Sequence record: NC_049850.1
Strand: one strand, 5' to 3'
DNA length: 64,000 nucleotides
Both the position numbers and the translations under genes were made by a program. Below the pieces are notes generated by a model, which was not told where the DNA came from, ran no database searches, and was given only the letters and a program-made list of their open reading frames with translations. Shown here piece by piece: positions 28,500 to 47,631 of the stretch; positions within the stretch are counted from its first letter, which is position 1; each line of letters opens with the position of its first letter.

Positions 28500-29286
28500 G
28501 TTACCAGCTTTCGATGGATGATGTTCTGGGGCTGGGCCACGGCATGCACCACATGGAAACGCGTCGGGGCATGATGACGAAAGCAGAGCCTGAACCGACC
28601 CCGGCCACGCGTCCGAAGCGCGTGAACAAGGTGTTCAGGGATCGGACGATTCGTATCAGCGCCGTGGACATGGATAAGCTGGCATGGACCTATGCCGAGT
28701 ATCTGGAGTCCGACTGCCCCGATGCCGAGAAGGATGCGGCACTCGATATCGCGCACCTGATGCTCAAAGTGCTCGACCAGATTACGGACATCCGTAAGCA
28801 TCCGAAATACGTAGAAACCAGCGACGATTACGCGGAGGCCGAGGCCCAAGCCGAGCGCGAACGCAGAGCCCGGCGCGCTAAGCGTGGACAAAACACACAG
28901 GAGAAATGAGTATGGCAGAATGGAACAAGCACCACGGCCGCCCTCTCGACCGTAGCGCGTGGACGCCGGAAGAGCATTCGATCATGGATGCCCACGAAAT
29001 GAGCACGGCCCTCGAATATCTGGTTCGCTCAGCCTACAAGCTGGGCAAAATCGCGGAATCTGGCGTCGAGGTCCTGCCCATCGAGTTCCCGTTCGAGTAC
29101 TCGGGCTACCGACTGGCCGCCGCGCTGGTAATGAACCACGACGTGGACGCGTACTACCTCGAAACCGGGATAATTGACCCGCTGGTCGAGGCGCTTCAGC
29201 GCTACGAGGAAAGTGGTGGTGCAGCCCATATCGGGTACAAGACTGGGATCATGGGCAACGAGCTTGCACCCGCACCGTATCACTGA
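28496..29286 (+). CDS. Two hypothetical proteins (28496-28909, 28906-29286)
   Basis: Coupled ORFs. Confidence 0.7.
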
Positions 29287-29292
29287 TATAGT
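29264..29292 (+). promoter_or_regulatory. sigma70-type promoter
   Basis: TTGCAC-N17-TATAGT. Confidence 0.7.
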
Positions 29293-29325
29293 CGCATTAG
29301 CTCAACATGTAAATGGGAGGTAAAA

Positions 29326-30455
29326 GTGGAAGAACCGAAAGCAAAGTTTGTGGAATACCCGGAACTCGTGGGCACGGAGCGATTCGAGGCGTTTGTGGAC
29401 CAGACACTGGAAAAACACCTCGTCGAGTGGTTCGGTGAAACGGCGCTCAAAGAAGCCGAGGGCATGATCAATCAAACGCGCATCGCTAGTATGGCGCGTT
29501 CGCTGCTCAACAAGTTCCTGTCGTACGCGCGTGTTGAACAGGGTCCGCTCCTGAAGCCGGACACCGCCATCGACGCGGCACGCGCGTTCGCCAACGTCGA
29601 GTTGCGCGCCGACCGCAAGGAACTGACGGACTGGGAAACCGTGTTCGCGTCCCAACTCGCGCGCCTTCTGGTTCGGGGGCCGCAGTGATCATGGCATTCA
29701 TCAACTGGTACAAGAAACTGTCGGGCGGCCGTGCGAGCCCTATCGCGACCGTCGCAGAGGCAATCAAGCAGGCGGCCCCGGGCCCGGACTCCAAGTACCC
29801 GACCGATGTATTCAAGGGTGACCATAAGAAACTGGTGGAGGAAGCCTCCGCGTTTCTGCGCACCAACAAACCGGGTGCCGAGTTCTACATCAGGACGAGT
29901 TCTTGGGCCGAGGATGTGGTGAAGTACGTGCTGGTGGCCCTGAATCAGGCTGGTCTGTACCCGCTTTATGAGTGGCGGATGGTGGATGTGCTAAAGCGGG
30001 AACACCCGATGATCGGCGGCCGATCCAACGACTACATCCACGTGCTGACGGTGCGTGAGCCCGTACCCGCACTTACCGCGACTGACGCACGCGAGGGTGC
30101 GGACGACGCTCGCAAGGAACTGCATGCGCGGGCCGCACGCACGGCCGCCTCGGTGCTGACCGGGATCGATATCGCAGTCGACGCCGCACGTCGACGTGCA
30201 GACCTGCGTGCCAAGATCGAGCTTGCGTACGATTATCTGGACAACAAAGAGTACGAGAGTGAGCTTCTGCGGCTGCTTCGTAACGAATTGACGGCGCGCG
30301 GGTTCCAGTACGAAATCGATATCCAGCGTGTCAGGACCGGCATGTACGACCACTCGTGGCGCGTCTGCGGCACCCTCCACTGGGGCAGCGACGCACAGCC
30401 GGATTTGTTTGACGAGGTTCCGCAAAAGGTCGTGAAGGAAGGCCGTGATGGCTAA
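29326..30455 (+). CDS. Two hypothetical proteins (29326-29688, 29685-30455)
   Basis: GGAGG RBS; coupled. Confidence 0.7.
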
Positions 30456-30897
30456 GCCGTATTACCGGGTCAGCGCGGAAATCGCTGAGGTGCAGGTCCT
30501 GTCGATTCTGTCGAACGAGGTGCAAGTCGAGTACGACCGGCTCGTGGCCGAGGCCAACACCAAGTTCTACAAGGGCTGTACCACGGTCATTCGCTCGCAC
30601 ATGGTCCACCACATGCAGAACCTGCTGGACCGGTTCTATCACTCGGACACGATTGCGGGCTACGTGATCACGTGTGATGACGACACGAATCCGGGCGACG
30701 AGTTGCACGGGCTCAACATGCTGATCCAGATTCCGCCCGGAGGGCAGCGTGGCGACGGTATGGTGGAGCACGTGTTTCGAGGCCGTCGTTCGAATCCGGA
30801 AGCGTCCAAGGCGCTTACTAACGCAGTGGCCTACGCATCGACGGTTCCGTACGAAGGGCCGGTTTCGGATGCTGATCTTTACATGGAGGGTTTTTGA
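30448..30897 (+). CDS. Protein with tail-sheath C-terminal-like motif
   Basis: IRSHMVHHMQNLLDRFYHSDTIAGYVITCDDDTNP resembles T4 gp18 IYEYRVVCDTTNNTP. Confidence 0.45.
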   Translation: MAKPYYRVSAEIAEVQVLSILSNEVQVEYDRLVAEANTKFYKGCTTVIRSHMVHHMQNLLDRFYHSDTIAGYVITCDDDTNPGDELHGLNMLIQIPPGGQRGDGMVEHVFRGRRSNPEASKALTNAVAYASTVPYEGPVSDADLYMEGF

Positions 30898-31106
30898 TGA
30901 AAGACAAACGTTACGATGCGCGGCTCAAGGAGTACGTGGAGAGCCCGGCCCACGTCGAGGCTTTCCTCGACGAGTACGAGGCACTGTGCCAGAAATTTGG
31001 CCTGAGTCTCAGCCACGAGGATGCGCACGGTGGTTTCATCATCGAGGAATTTCACGAATACAACATGAAGTGGGTGCGCGAGGCGTCCATGCAGGTGGCT
31101 GAATAA
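30894..31106 (+). CDS. Hypothetical protein
   Basis: GGAGG RBS. Confidence 0.65.
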   Translation: MMKDKRYDARLKEYVESPAHVEAFLDEYEALCQKFGLSLSHEDAHGGFIIEEFHEYNMKWVREASMQVAE

Positions 31107-31285
31107 TGGATCGAAGTGACGAGTACTACGAGGGCTACGAAGCGTTCGCCTTGGGCATGACGGATGCAGATAATCCGTACGCCGCTGGCACCGACGAGGG
31201 CATGGACTGGTTCGACGGTCTGGCGGATGCCGAGAACGACCACTACAACCCGCCCGAAGAAGGTTCGGCAAAGGAGCGAGCATGA
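31106..31285 (+). CDS. Ribosome modulation factor (Rmf)-like protein 1 (59 aa, not in track)
   Basis: YYEGYEAFALGMTDADNPYAAGTDEGMDWFDGLADA. Confidence 0.55.
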   Translation: MDRSDEYYEGYEAFALGMTDADNPYAAGTDEGMDWFDGLADAENDHYNPPEEGSAKERA

Positions 31286-31491
31286 CCCTGATCGAACTGG
31301 CAAACAAAGTGAACCAGATGCTGGCAGACGGTGCGGACCCCAATCTCGTGGTCGGAGGCCCTGATCCGTGTGGTGATCTGCTGTGCGAGTTGCTGGATAT
31401 CGGACTCGCGCATGGTGCCAATGCCGTACGCCGTGGCAAACAGCAGTACGTCGAATTACTGGGAATCTGGTCGTTACCGGACCCGAACTAA
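31282..31491 (+). CDS. Hypothetical protein
   Basis: AAGGAG RBS; ATGA overlap. Confidence 0.6.
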   Translation: MTLIELANKVNQMLADGADPNLVVGGPDPCGDLLCELLDIGLAHGANAVRRGKQQYVELLGIWSLPDPN

Positions 31492-31501
31492 CGGAGGAAG
31501 G

Positions 31502-32353
31502 ATGTCGAAGAAGATGAAGAAAGACGCGCTGGGTGACCTGATGAAGGCGTACGAGGCGTTGGAGACGGAACGCAAGTTCATGCCCGGTGCCTATACGATG
31601 GCCCGGCTCGACGGCCGTGCGTTCCACACGTTCACGCGTGGTCTGGAGCGCCCGTACTCGACGCGGTTCTCGCGATGCATGGCCGAGACGGCTGCGGCGC
31701 TCGTGCAAGATTTCCACGCTGATCTCGCGTACACCCAGAGCGATGAAATCACTCTCGTGTGGGTGCCGCGTGCGCAGGAAGAAATGATCTTCGGTGGCCG
31801 CATTTTCAAACTGAAGTCGCTTCTGGCGTCGCGTGCTTCCATCGCGTTTCTGCGTGCCGTGGCTCGCGAGATTCCGGAGAAGGCACACCTGAACCCGATC
31901 TTCGATTGCCGTGCGTTTGCGATGCCCAACGAAGCAGCGGCGTTCCAAGCATTCCAATGGCGTGAAATCGATGCGACCCGCAACTCGCTGATCATGCTGA
32001 CGCAGGCGCACTACTCGCAAAAGGAAATGCACAAGAAGGGCGTGGCCGACCAGCACAACATGCTGCACGCCAAGGGCATCAACTGGAACGACGAGCCTGC
32101 GTTCTTCAAGCGCGGGACGTACCTGCGCCGCACCAGTTACCTGAAGGAATTGACGGGTGCCGAGTTGACGCGGATTCCGCTGCACAAGCGTCCGGAAGGC
32201 CCTGTGGTCCGAAGCGCTGTATTCCCGCTGGCTGTGCCACCGATCTACCAAATCGATGCGCTTGACTGGATCATCAACGCACCGGACCCGGACCTTACGC
32301 ACCCGTGGTTCCCGAACGAGGCGCTGCGCGAGTCATTGCGCGCGTGTGCATAA
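31502..32353 (+). CDS. Thg1-like tRNA(His) guanylyltransferase / 3'-5' polymerase
   Basis: MKAYE, ARLDGRAFHTFT, YTQSDEITL, FDCRAF, WREIDATRNS, HNML...GINWND, KRGTY. Confidence 0.92.
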   Translation: MSKKMKKDALGDLMKAYEALETERKFMPGAYTMARLDGRAFHTFTRGLERPYSTRFSRCMAETAAALVQDFHADLAYTQSDEITLVWVPRAQEEMIFGGRIFKLKSLLASRASIAFLRAVAREIPEKAHLNPIFDCRAFAMPNEAAAFQAFQWREIDATRNSLIMLTQAHYSQKEMHKKGVADQHNMLHAKGINWNDEPAFFKRGTYLRRTSYLKELTGAELTRIPLHKRPEGPVVRSAVFPLAVPPIYQIDALDWIINAPDPDLTHPWFPNEALRESLRACA

Positions 32354-32364
32354 TCGTGTAAAGT
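32336..32364 (+). promoter_or_regulatory. sigma70-type promoter
   Basis: TTGCGC-N17-TAAAGT. Confidence 0.6.
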
Positions 32365-32387
32365 TTGGCCTCTTTTACGGAGGTTGA

Positions 32388-32531
32388 ATGAAAAGCGACG
32401 AGTTTTACGCCGGTCGACTTGCAGGTCTGTGTCACCGCCTGCGAGTCAACCCGCATCAAACGAAGTTCAAACGCGCTGACTGGTTCGCCGGTTACGACGA
32501 GGCAAAGCGCATTCTCAAGGAGAAGCAATGA
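32388..32531 (+). CDS. Rmf-like protein 2 (47 aa, not in track)
   Basis: MKSDEFYAGRLAGLCHRLRVNPHQTKFKRADWFAGYDEAKRILKEKQ; GGAGG RBS. Confidence 0.65.
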   Translation: MKSDEFYAGRLAGLCHRLRVNPHQTKFKRADWFAGYDEAKRILKEKQ

Positions 32532-43809: not shown

Positions 43810-44070
43810 ATGTTTGGCATTCTGAAGAAGATTTTCGGGGACCCCGAAGACCCGACCGTGTGCGCTATGGCCTACGCGCGTGGCCGAAGCTATGCACTAG
43901 GCGAGTTCCTTAAAGTGGACTACAACGATGATGCCGAGCTTGGTCCCGTGGTAGACCGCCTGCAAGCTGAGTGCTGTGGCAGTTTCAACACAACGGGCAA
44001 AGAGCACGCGTTCGACCGTGGCATTCAGGCTGTGCTCGACGAGTACTACACCGAGCAGGGTATGCCTTGA
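43810..44070 (+). CDS. Hypothetical protein
   Basis: GGAG RBS. Confidence 0.65.
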   Translation: MFGILKKIFGDPEDPTVCAMAYARGRSYALGEFLKVDYNDDAELGPVVDRLQAECCGSFNTTGKEHAFDRGIQAVLDEYYTEQGMP

Positions 44071-44095
44071 CAGCGTAGGCAGAACTATTTAAACT
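44067..44095 (+). promoter_or_regulatory. sigma70-type promoter
   Basis: TTGACA-N17-TAAACT. Confidence 0.85.
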
Positions 44096-44121
44096 TGCGC
44101 CATTCCATTCAAGGAGAGCAA

Positions 44122-45273
44122 ATGTTTCCGACAATCAAACATATCAACGATCTGCAACCGTTCGTTGAAGGCATCGAAGAGATCAAGTTCCTGAAGCAGC
44201 CGGGTCAACGCACGGTCGTCTGCTACACGTTCATGGACAGCCACACGTTCGACACGCCGAAGGCCCGTGAGTGCCGTGGTATCTCGTTCGACATCAACGG
44301 CAACGTCGAGAGCCGCCCGCTCCACAAGTTCTTCAACATGGGCGAAAAGCCGTGGCTCATGGAGGACAACATCCGACGCGCGGGGCGCGCGGGTGCCATC
44401 GTCGGCATCTACAACAAGATCGACGGTTCGATGGTGAACACGTCGTACTCGATGGCCAGCGGCTTTGCCTACAAGTCGAAGAAGTCGTATTCGAGCGATA
44501 CCGTCCTCATGTTCGAGAAGCATGTGCCGGTGCGCATCGACGAGTTCTCGCGCCGTGTCGCGGGCATGGGCTACACCGCGACTTACGAGTTCACGCACCC
44601 GGAAGCCCAGATCGTGGTTCCGCACGCGGTGCCCGACATCAAGCTCCTGCACATCCGGGACAACACGACGGGCGAATACGTGATGCTGAACAAACAGCAC
44701 ATGATCTGGGACCTGATCCACGCGCACGCGGTGCCGTATTCGGTGAATCTGCTGCCGGAACTCTCGGTCGACGCCGCTATCGACAGTCTCGAATCCATGA
44801 TCGACAACGAGGGCTTCGTCTTCCAGTTCGCGGACGGTGACATGGTGAAAGCCAAGTGCCCATGGTATTCGTCGAACCATCGTGCGGTCTCGTACATGCG
44901 CGAACGCGATATCGCGGTGCTCGTGCTGAACGAGCAACTGGACGATCTGAAGGGCACGCTCGTGAAGCTGGGTCACGATCTGGGCCCCGTCGAAGAGGTG
45001 GAGCACCGGGTCAAGGAGCGCATGCTCCAGATCGACCGTGACATCGAATTTCTGGCGGACATCGGTCGCGTGCTCCGCGCCTCGAACCCGGCAGGCTGGA
45101 AAAAGGCGTTTGCGGCGTCCCACTCGAAGCTCGAAGTGTTCGGCCTCGCGGTCAAGCGACTGGAAGGCCGCGACGAGCAGATCGTGAAGTGGTATACGCG
45201 CTCGAAGCTGAAGGACGAATTCGGGCTACGCTCGCTCCTGAACGCAAGCCAGCAAGAGGCAATGGAGGGTTAA
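44122..45273 (+). CDS. RNA ligase, T4 Rnl1-like
   Basis: ECRGISF, SRPLHKFFNMGE, motif I KIDGS, TATYEF, EGFV, MVKAK. Confidence 0.9.
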   Translation: MFPTIKHINDLQPFVEGIEEIKFLKQPGQRTVVCYTFMDSHTFDTPKARECRGISFDINGNVESRPLHKFFNMGEKPWLMEDNIRRAGRAGAIVGIYNKIDGSMVNTSYSMASGFAYKSKKSYSSDTVLMFEKHVPVRIDEFSRRVAGMGYTATYEFTHPEAQIVVPHAVPDIKLLHIRDNTTGEYVMLNKQHMIWDLIHAHAVPYSVNLLPELSVDAAIDSLESMIDNEGFVFQFADGDMVKAKCPWYSSNHRAVSYMRERDIAVLVLNEQLDDLKGTLVKLGHDLGPVEEVEHRVKERMLQIDRDIEFLADIGRVLRASNPAGWKKAFAASHSKLEVFGLAVKRLEGRDEQIVKWYTRSKLKDEFGLRSLLNASQQEAMEG

Positions 45274-45961
45274 ATGATCAGCGCAACAGAACTTCGTGCG
45301 CTTTACTGTGATCCTGTGGCCGCTACACTGGGTCGCGTAGAACGAGCCCTAGTCCAAAACTTGGATAAGGCACTCGACCGCAACAAGGGCGCGACACCGC
45401 CGCGTACCAGCGTGTTCGTGGACGCATCGCTTTCCGATGACGAGCTAGAGCGCGTGCGCACCGTTATCGTCGCCAACGGCTTCGGGTTTGCAGTCGACCT
45501 CAGCTACGGTAACGCGCTGCTGCGAAGGATCATCGTCACGTGGCAAGCACGGGCCAGACGCCGGGTCCCGGACCAGCAAACCGTCACGATCTCGGAAACG
45601 ATCGTGCACGACCGATCAGGAGCGCGCCAAGCATGAAAGACAAAGACGTTGTGTTGTGGATTTGGGCCGTGGTAGCCGCAATCATCGTGTGCTCGGCTCT
45701 GGATCACTTAGGGGTCGCGTTGTGAAGTACTTGATCTACGACTGGTGCATCGACATCGGTGTCTGGAACAAGCACGACGACATAAACCGTGTGATCGACG
45801 CGCTTGCGCAGCAGGGTTACGTGACGGACGATGTGGTGATCACCTCGATCTGGATCAGTCACTCGCGCAAAGCCGACAGCAACTGGTTGCCGATGGACAA
45901 TCTGACCGACGAAGAGTTGGCGGCTGTCTTCATCGGCTACTGCGAACGACAGGAGTGTTGA
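45274..45961 (+). CDS. Three small hypothetical proteins (45274-45636, 45633-45725, 45722-45961)
   Basis: Coupled ORFs. Confidence 0.55.
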
Positions 45962-45963
45962 AA

Positions 45964-46800
45964 ATGTACGAAACGATGGATGCCCGGATCAAGGACGCGC
46001 TGGATCACGTGGAACGCACGCAGGGCGTGAAAATCCTGATGGCTGTGGAATCGGGCTCGCGCGCATGGGGCTTCGAGAGCCCGGACTCGGATTACGACGT
46101 GCGGTTCATCTACGTGCGTGCGTTCAACGAGTACCTGACGGTGCGCGAGCGCCGTGACGTACTGGATTGCCACACGCAGGGCTTCAAGGACTGCCTGAAG
46201 GGCACGCCCATGGATCACCCGGACCTCGATCTCGTGGGCTGGGACGTGAAGAAGGTGCTGGCTTTGATGCAAAAGTCGAATCCGCAACTTCTGGAATGGA
46301 TCAACTCGCCTGTCGTGTATCGCGGCAACCACGCGGCCGTGGATGACCTGTATGTTCTGGCCCACAAGATGCTGCGTGCGCGGCCCGTGATCCAGCACTA
46401 CCTGCACATGGCCAAGGGCAACTATCGCGAGTATCTGAGGACGCCGATGGTGCGCTACAAGAAGTACCTGTACGTGATCCGTCCTCTGCTGGCCGCGCGC
46501 TGGATGCTGGAACGCCTCGATCCGCCGCCCGTGCGATTCGATGTGCTGAACGCGGCGGTCGGAGACGAGGGCTTGGGGGAACCGCTGGCTCGTCTGCTGG
46601 AAGTCAAACGCCGTTCTGGTGAGGCTGAATTGCATCCGGCCGACCCGGCACTGAACCTGTGGATCGAGGACGCGATTCGCGATATCGAAGACGCGCTGGC
46701 CTACGTTATGGAGGGTCCGGATCACGGGCTCGATCTGGACGCCGAATTCCGGGACCTGCTATACGCGTGGGCCCCGGGTGCCGTGGGGACCAGACAATGA
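45964..46800 (+). CDS. Pol-beta superfamily nucleotidyltransferase (RlaP/YcgL, PF10127-like)
   Basis: AVESGSRAWGFESPDSDYDVRFIY, LDLVGWDVKK, KSNP, KKYLYVIRPLLA. Confidence 0.88.
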   Translation: MYETMDARIKDALDHVERTQGVKILMAVESGSRAWGFESPDSDYDVRFIYVRAFNEYLTVRERRDVLDCHTQGFKDCLKGTPMDHPDLDLVGWDVKKVLALMQKSNPQLLEWINSPVVYRGNHAAVDDLYVLAHKMLRARPVIQHYLHMAKGNYREYLRTPMVRYKKYLYVIRPLLAARWMLERLDPPPVRFDVLNAAVGDEGLGEPLARLLEVKRRSGEAELHPADPALNLWIEDAIRDIEDALAYVMEGPDHGLDLDAEFRDLLYAWAPGAVGTRQ

Positions 46801-47631
46801 AGCTGCTGTCAACAGGGAAGTTGTATAACTCGTCGTACTCGGGCTGTGAGGGCTGGTCCTCGTGTCTGGTTGGCACGATTTCGCTTGTGGCCGACACGCA
46901 GCGGGAACTGGACGCGCTGAAGGTGATGCACGAGCAGGATCAGCGCCAATACTCCGACAAGTACACGCGTCGCGAGGTTGTGTGGGAGGACGCATGAAGG
47001 TCAGAAAGATCGCGAAGCGCGCTCCCAAGTTCCTGACGCGGCACTGGAACGAAGAGGTGGTGCGCATAGCGGATGCGCTGGAACGGGACGGAGAAGAGGC
47101 GTTGCGCGCCATTCAAGTGAGTCACGTGCGCTTACCGGGCTACGAAGACGTGTATACGCAAGGCCCGTTCACCATCGAGTTCAAGCCGCAGCACCAGCCG
47201 AAGATCATCGAGTGGATCAACGTGAGCACGCTCGGTGAGCAGGTCCAAAAACGTGTCGTAGGAGGTGTCAAATGAGTAACGCAGCAGTAGAAGCAATCAA
47301 GTTCGCGCTCGATCAAGGGCTAGACGGCCTGTCGTTCCTGAACGCGTGGCTGCACGGTGATTTCGATGTCCTGCGGCGCGAGTGGCCGGAGGCCCCGGAA
47401 GACGTGTACCCGGTGATCGGTGAAGTCCTCGATCAGAAAGTGCCGCTTCCGAACGGTGAGTACGTGCTGATGTACCCGACCTCGACTTCCGAGATCGAAG
47501 GAGATAGCAACGTGCAGGAGGTGACATTCAAGGTGACGTTCGATCAGGACAACAAGGTGTCGCCGGAAACCCTGCTGGGCGGCGCGCAGTCGAGCCAGCT
47601 TGGGCACCGGTTCGGTGCACCTCAGTCGTAA
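46797..47631 (+). CDS. Three hypothetical proteins (46797-46997, 46994-47275, 47272-47631)
   Basis: ATGA overlaps. Confidence 0.65.

Follow-up and report, generated by a model that had tools for sequence, protein, structure and literature searches.

Rmf-fold mini-proteins gp330 and gp333 of Burkholderia phage BcepSaruman, encoded on either side of a Thg1-like gene, belong to a mostly acidic phage and prophage family distinct from Rmf

The 64,000-nucleotide stretch analyzed here (sequence record NC_049850.1; hereafter the window) is 100% identical to the corresponding part of Burkholderia phage BcepSaruman (MK552140.1, 263,735 bp), a B. cenocepacia jumbo phage; record coordinates are obtained by adding 186000 to window coordinates. 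We investigated two very small genes in this window, gp330 and gp333, which stand on either side of a gene for a Thg1-like tRNA-His guanylyltransferase and whose products resemble the ribosome modulation factor Rmf. An earlier inspection made from the DNA letters alone (the sequence-only reading) had pointed out both open reading frames (ORFs), and we found them at the positions and with the translations that it gave. Its description of the pair as flanking Thg1 also held, with gp331 separating gp330 from Thg1. The genes and features at the locus, in window coordinates, are the following.

30897-31106, plus strand: gp329, 69 aa
31106-31285, plus strand: gp330 (BcepSaruman_330), 59 aa, acidic, predicted Rmf-fold mini-protein
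31282-31491, plus strand: gp331, 69 aa, acidic; no family match and not RMF-like
31502-32353, plus strand: gp332, Thg1-like tRNA-His guanylyltransferase (Pfam Thg1, E 4e-28; PHROG, E 7e-66)
32379-32383, plus strand: GGAGG, Shine-Dalgarno (SD) sequence of gp333, inside the 34-nt gap after Thg1
32388-32531, plus strand: gp333 (BcepSaruman_333), 47 aa, basic, predicted Rmf-fold mini-protein

Both mini-genes had been described as missed by the ORF track. They are indeed absent from the ORF list that accompanied that description, but each is an annotated coding sequence in GenBank under the name 'hypothetical protein'. They lie in a single co-directional, tightly packed block that extends from gp322 to gp380. 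The stop codon of gp329 and the start codon of gp330 have one base in common, ATGA overlaps join the gp330 stop to the gp331 start and the gp333 stop to the gp334 start, and an SD-like AGGTGG precedes gp330. Comparison with the sister phage BcepSauron, which is 87% identical across the region, gave ratios of nonsynonymous to synonymous substitution rates (dN/dS) of 0.23 for gp330 and 0.18 for gp333, with neighboring genes at 0.13-0.19. Only a single residue of gp333 is changed in its Sauron orthologue (98% conserved), and gp330 is 68% identical to its own at the protein level. Because dN/dS falls at 0.18-0.23, starts and stops are coupled and GenBank lists both as coding sequences, we regard gp330 and gp333 as real, translated-looking genes. 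Their predicted products differ in charge as the sequence-only reading had said, gp330 being strongly acidic (isoelectric point, pI, 4.05; net charge -14) and gp333 basic (pI 9.8; net charge +4.7). The same reading had given gp333 a promoter of its own. A consensus scan of the 34-nt gap before gp333 detected no sigma-70-like promoter and no terminator; since there is no such site and the gene sits in a long co-directional block, the promoter claim found no support. A phage-specific promoter may nevertheless precede gp333.

We then compared both proteins with the RMF family by sequence profile and by predicted fold. The Pfam model PF04957 (RMF) gave a significant match to gp330 (E 8.9e-6, 26.1 bits) and to gp333 (E 7.8e-4, 19.9 bits). 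A six-frame scan of the whole 264-kb genome with this model returned the same two loci (E 4.7e-6 and 8.2e-4), gp330 and gp333 were the only two matches of a family hidden Markov model (HMM) on the window, and a family HMM built without gp333 recovered gp333 at E 8e-6. In the reverse direction, a 45-member phage/prophage profile searched against 177,635 distinct Protein Data Bank (PDB) sequences found only Rmf (2JRM, E 1.2e-7; 6H4N chain v, E 9.4e-7; 4V8G, E 1.3e-6), and Rmf was likewise the best PDB sequence match of gp333. AlphaFold2 predicted helices at residues 5-15 and 30-47 of gp330 (predicted local distance difference test, pLDDT, 87.8) and at residues 4-14 and 26-46 of gp333 (pLDDT 91.4). 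When these models were searched with Foldseek against 350,542 PDB chains, Rmf occupied ranks 1-3 for both, with template modeling (TM) scores of 0.60-0.74. In the Swiss-Prot fold search with gp330, ranks 1-21 were all Rmf, and the root-mean-square deviation (rmsd) from E. coli Rmf was 1.3 A over 42 residues. The Foldseek E-values are weak by themselves (0.1-2.4), because the proteins are tiny. Fold rank, sequence profile and reciprocal search all agree, however, and on that agreement we conclude that gp330 and gp333 are predicted to adopt the Rmf fold and share detectable sequence ancestry with Rmf. Of the outcomes that the sequence-only reading had named as refuting it, neither of the two computational ones, a missing RMF profile match and a missing structure match, came about.

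The likeness to Rmf (E. coli P0AFW2, PDB 6H4N chain v and 9IOT; Vibrio parahaemolyticus 2JRM) extends to a length of about 50 aa and to two helices with a linker of roughly 12-14 residues. The skeleton common to gp330, gp333 and Rmf consists of Gly, Ala, Asn/Cys-Pro-Tyr/His, Trp, Gly and Ala, and the scaffold positions Gly16, Ala19, Pro30, Tyr31, Trp40, Gly43 and Ala47 (E. coli numbering) are represented in the phage proteins. That this skeleton is kept had been claimed from the letters. The claim stands in that the PF04957 matches lie beyond chance, but gp330 keeps the skeleton only in part, having A-F where A-G was expected and L instead of W/Y after the glycine. By their positions, the residues shared with Rmf look like those of a hairpin scaffold.

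Resemblance in fold was not accompanied by membership in the Rmf group proper. Neither gp330 (26.1 bits) nor gp333 (19.9 bits) reached the gathering cut-off of PF04957, which is set at 27.9 bits; it was passed by the positional orthologue of gp333 in an uncultured relative that we call phage X (32.1 bits) and by a prophage copy (29.6 bits). The NCBIfam model NF011162, which defines Rmf equivalogs with a cut-off of 40 bits, scored gp330 at 13.0 bits and gp333 at 16.9 bits, in both cases below that value. The structure of the E. coli hibernating ribosome indicates which parts of Rmf hold it in place (Beckert et al. 2018, bioRxiv 10.1101/382572). Arg3, Lys5, Arg8, Arg11 and Arg15 form a network of hydrogen bonds with the 16S backbone in the cleft between h28 and h37/h40, the N-terminal extension is intertwined with S7, helix 2 and the linker keep the 16S 3' end in position, and Arg37 contacts domain 4 of S1 in the hibernating 70S ribosome; Rmf has many conserved positively charged residues, and 100S formation of the Rmf/HPF type is a gammaproteobacterial trait (bioRxiv 10.1101/382572). 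In HMMER alignments Rmf Gly16 falls on the Gly that is conserved in the phage proteins, so that Met1 of gp330 corresponds to Rmf residue 7 (Asp7) and Met1 of gp333 to residue 8 (Arg8). Since the phage proteins begin only at these residues, Arg3 and Lys5 have no counterpart and the N-terminal basic arm is missing. Arg8 is replaced by Asp in gp330 and by Met in gp333, Arg11 by Asp in both, and Arg15 by Glu in gp330 and by Ala in gp333; the family consensus shows Asp and Glu at the positions of Arg11 and Arg15. Counterparts of Arg24, Lys26 and Arg37 are retained in gp333. We also searched for Rmf on the host side, where the order to which an Undibacterium genome belongs served as proxy for that of the phage host (Burkholderiales). 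None of 151 genomes sampled across that order passed the Rmf equivalog model, while the E. coli control was positive, a result that agrees with the gammaproteobacterial restriction of Rmf/HPF-type 100S formation. By these comparisons gp330 and gp333 are not Rmf orthologues, and because the parts with which Rmf grips rRNA are missing, their job is probably a different one.

To place the two proteins among their relatives, we relied on an exhaustive profile search over 1.84 billion representatives, as searches of lower sensitivity returned little. Word-index searches with single proteins recovered the query and its orthologue in Sauron and nothing else, only two loci came from a strict DNA pattern, and a narrower alignment found six viral and two genomic loci. 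The exhaustive search yielded 56 representatives at E<1e-3, most of them 46-76 aa long and strongly acidic, with the motif E-G-x2-A ... G ... D-N-P-Y-x2-G-T/S ... D-W-x-D-G ... A. PF04957 matched 37 of 38 family members (best E 1.9e-11). The nearest relatives of gp330 lie in the early regions of Burkholderia ubonensis prophages, whose loci carry 2-3 RMF-like genes each, none of them basic. One of these relatives (P0078) has been named 'ribosome modulation factor' automatically by NCBI, and an ORF of Myoviridae sp. ctu2j3 (A0A8S5UIL5) bears the same automatic name. Profile and fold place these auto-named ORFs in the same family, and we take them to be the true nearest relatives of gp330 and gp333; they differ in that their Rmf name rests on a Pfam match only, the BcepSaruman genes still being called 'hypothetical protein'. 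Among viral structure predictions in BFVD, more than 150 fold matches were obtained, nearly all 'uncharacterized', with several copies in the Caulobacter phages CcrSC and CcrBL9 and others in phAPEC8, Serratia PS2, Rhizobium phages and a haloarchaeal virus. An ESM Atlas feature search gave weak leads only. The family thus described is mostly acidic, fast-diversifying and often multi-copy. Rmf itself is strongly basic, encoded on the chromosome in Gammaproteobacteria and active together with short HPF, whereas the phage family is phage- or prophage-borne and, like gp330, for the most part strongly acidic. We found no study of phage-encoded Rmf-like proteins in the searchable literature, and a comparative paper on jumbo phages makes no mention of Rmf. 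A further lead is CrpP, a protein of about 65 aa from Pseudomonas integrative and conjugative elements (ICEs) and plasmids, which may have the Rmf fold as well. Its claimed ciprofloxacin-modifying activity has been disputed.

Beyond gp330 and gp333, BcepSaruman itself contained one further member of the family and one weak candidate.

Record 81476-81772 (L009:2977-3273), minus strand: third copy, an unannotated 98-aa ORF whose first ~40 residues are RMF-like (PF04957, E 4.4e-4)
Record 251231-251407 (L035:632-808), minus strand: gp420, 58 aa, a weak and divergent fourth candidate (phage-family profile, E 0.003)

The third copy lies between gp147 and gp148; 2 nt separate its start from the stop of gp148, and it overlaps the start of gp147. 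It carries a C-terminal extension of about 55 aa that has no family match, and the identical protein is present in Sauron. In gp420 'NRY' takes the place of the family's 'NPY'. BcepSaruman therefore has three copies, perhaps four. Elsewhere in the family, the metagenomic proteins P0012 (637 aa), P0018, P0022 and P0031 hold one or more RMF modules within far longer polypeptides, P0012 having two strong modules by Pfam and four stretches by the phage-family profile. In the B. ubonensis prophage with three RMF-like genes (L012:3941-5633), an Avd-like gene adjoins a reverse transcriptase, which is the signature of a diversity-generating retroelement.

The neighborhood of Thg1 was examined first in phage X, which was reached through P0064 and is represented by loci L013-L015 on contigs reaching 229,672 bp. 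The Thg1 of phage X shares 52% identity with that of BcepSaruman, and nine RMF-like modules surround it (e.g. L014:5873-8873), three upstream and six downstream in a tight array; one of the upstream modules is embedded in a 159-aa protein. A homologue of gp329 lies directly upstream of Thg1 (L014:6677-6937), so synteny is shared with BcepSaruman on that side as well. Directly behind Thg1 stands a basic copy (pI 9.2), the one with which gp333 pairs best, and the other copies are acidic or mildly acidic (pI 4.05-5.0). The order of Thg1 followed by a basic RMF-like gene has therefore been kept in both phages, while the other copies have moved. The best pairings were of gp333 with this copy (X_d) and of gp330 with another copy (X_e) and a prophage copy; because the two pair best with different relatives, gp330 and gp333 are old paralogues, each with its own orthologue. 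More than 900 contigs encode proteins of phage X. Many belong to assemblies labeled Staphylococcus or Enterococcus, a pattern suggestive of widespread contamination or of a host associated with reagents and not of those species themselves.

Outside these phages the association with Thg1 stopped. No RMF-like gene was found within 6 kb of Thg1 in FLC9, RsoM2USA, LR756511 (a 595-kb uncultured phage), Variovorax phage V45v66 or CcrColossus, and searching these five genome-wide gave one weak match only, about 400 kb from its phage's Thg1. CcrSC, which encodes Thg1, has four RMF-like genes, every one of them more than 30 kb away from it. For pEa_SNUABM_47 and 201phi2-1 the phage-family profile detected none, a weaker negative, and BFVD lists a weak fold match in pEa_SNUABM_47. 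A general linkage to Thg1 was rejected on the six other Thg1 jumbo phages that have no RMF-like neighbor of Thg1. Because the association ends outside the clade of BcepSaruman and phage X, the linkage is a neighborhood inherited within that clade rather than a functional coupling of general validity; the basic copy may have a specific role together with Thg1. Other candidate RNA-repair genes occur in the same part of the genome. At 12-14 kb downstream of Thg1, about 44000-47000 of the window (record 230122-232800), the same co-directional run of some 60 small genes includes a T4 RnlA-like RNA ligase (gp370) and a putative nucleotidyltransferase (gp374), and in phage X Rnl1 and RlaP are found upstream. 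The joint presence of RtcB, Rnl1 and Rnl2 in BcepSaruman and BcepSauron has been described (PMC7824862).

Alignment of BcepSaruman with BcepSauron revealed a mosaic of identity around the two genes. Most of the region is 93-99% identical, with dips at window positions 28900-29750, 31150-31300 and 31450-32350. Far more diverged than the rest are gp330 (72%), Thg1 (60-86%; 72.6% at the protein level) and gp325-gp326, and between the diverged genes gp331 and gp333 are 96% identical. The synonymous divergence of gp330 is high (dS = 0.69) at a dN/dS of 0.23, which, together with the mosaic, suggests allele replacement by recombination and not positive selection. Some of the Sauron labels in this region are tentative. 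The Sauron orthologue of gp330 (Sauron gp332; L002:3707-3889) is labeled 'DNase type 1?' and is actually an RMF-like mini-protein. Genes nearby are called 'porin', 'capsid protein (inclusion body)?', 'polyamine transporter' and 'carbamoyltransferase', their BcepSaruman counterparts being hypothetical; Pfam gave no match for gp327 and gp328, the counterparts of the 'porin' and 'capsid protein' genes.

On this evidence we think it probable that gp330, gp333 and their relatives constitute a family of Rmf-fold phage mini-proteins, separate from the Rmf orthologues, that serve as small adaptors in host takeover. Such adaptors would be built on the Rmf hairpin as a scaffold, each with a charged surface specific to its family, and their expression would go with that of the small-gene block that follows the replication genes. 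The basic gp333 type would be the only plausible binder of RNA (the 16S 3' end or tRNA) or of the ribosome. The acidic gp330 type would bind a basic protein surface, as a decoy or as a nucleic-acid mimic; a protein partner is the more likely one for it because the electrostatic mode of Rmf is closed to an acidic protein. Phages are known to make small acidic proteins that act as decoys or nucleic-acid mimics, such as T7 Ocr and phi29 p56. The gp330 type resembles these in being very small, strongly acidic and encoded in an early region, a functional analogy only, as neither has a sequence or fold relationship to gp330. Several points weigh against the adaptor interpretation. We infer the adaptor and decoy roles solely from charge, copy number and genomic setting. 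The fusions of family members to longer polypeptides brought in no other recognizable Pfam domain and hence no functional clue. A predicted complex of gp333 with gp330 scored 0.00, a value that by the tool's own statement is no evidence either way and so is uninformative. Finally, the part of Rmf that holds the 16S 3' end, its linker and helix 2, belongs to the scaffold held in common, and a ribosome-directed role is therefore possible, even for acidic copies, which could act through basic S7 or S21.

Among the alternatives, the one that best survived is the model put forward in the sequence-only reading, in which the basic copy binds the 30S subunit near the anti-SD sequence and silences or hibernates ribosomes, and the acidic copy antagonizes it. 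We consider this unlikely. The fold and the homology to Rmf are genuine as far as prediction goes, gp333 is basic and keeps the equivalents of Arg24, Lys26 and, at the S1-contacting position, Arg37, and the best conserved part of both proteins is the linker and helix 2 that place the 16S 3' end in Rmf. Set against these are the loss of the five residues that bind the rRNA backbone and of the S7-intertwining arm in both proteins, the failure of both at the Rmf equivalog model, and the lack of Rmf in the 151 sampled genomes; canonical 100S hibernation of the Rmf/HPF type by gp330 or gp333 is thus improbable on sequence grounds. The pairing of an active copy with an acidic antagonist is also unlikely to be the rule. 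The Burkholderia prophage loci examined contained acidic copies but yielded no basic one, and phage X has about seven acidic copies to its one basic copy. A dedicated one-to-one antagonist does not fit such numbers, and no gp330-gp333 complex was predicted, with the limit on that score given above.

A related possibility keeps the ribosome as the target and abandons rRNA as the contact. The phage family, charge-reversed copies included, would be derived from Rmf and would dock at or near the Rmf pocket of the 30S subunit via the basic proteins S7, S21, S2 and S9 or via S1, where it would reprogram initiation or wake hibernating ribosomes, the basic copy coupling this to tRNA repair. We regard this as having only a small chance of being correct.

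A smaller chance still is given to gp333 as an accessory of Thg1 or of tRNA repair, for instance as a tRNA- or Thg1-binding subunit, with the acidic copies as passengers. The link to tRNA repair had been part of the sequence-only reading too. The basic copy does follow Thg1 immediately in both BcepSaruman and phage X although their Thg1 proteins are only 52% identical and the other copies have changed place, BcepSaruman and BcepSauron are 98% identical in gp333 but 73% in Thg1, and Rnl1 and an RlaP-like nucleotidyltransferase are located in the same gene block. Common descent alone can explain the adjacency, however, as the neighborhood is inherited within one clade; six other Thg1 jumbo phages do not have an RMF-like gene near Thg1, and the four of CcrSC are all distant from it. 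That gp330 and gp333 are chance open frames or decaying remnants, as their very short length and their scores below the Pfam gathering threshold might suggest, is hardly credible and was rejected on purifying selection (dN/dS 0.18-0.23), in addition to which stand the SD-like sequences and coupled stop and start codons, the orthologues in BcepSauron and in phage X, the confident fold predictions and the large conserved family. Overall, the observation behind the sequence-only reading was partly confirmed and its interpretation partly supported.

Rmf has so far been treated as a gammaproteobacterial hibernation factor. The labeling of phage ORFs as Rmf by annotation pipelines already exists, and what is new here is the acidic, arrayed phage subfamily. 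The results show that phages and prophages of other hosts have acquired and multiplied the Rmf fold, for the most part in a charge-reversed version unable to function as Rmf does. Since the proteins are short, predicted to be well folded and easily expressed, their function is directly testable. If none of the members acts on the ribosome, the Rmf hairpin would be a general-purpose scaffold for small phage effectors, and the automatic label 'ribosome modulation factor', which is spreading in phage and prophage annotation, would mislead. If any member does act on the ribosome, the family would represent a new class of phage translation modulators.

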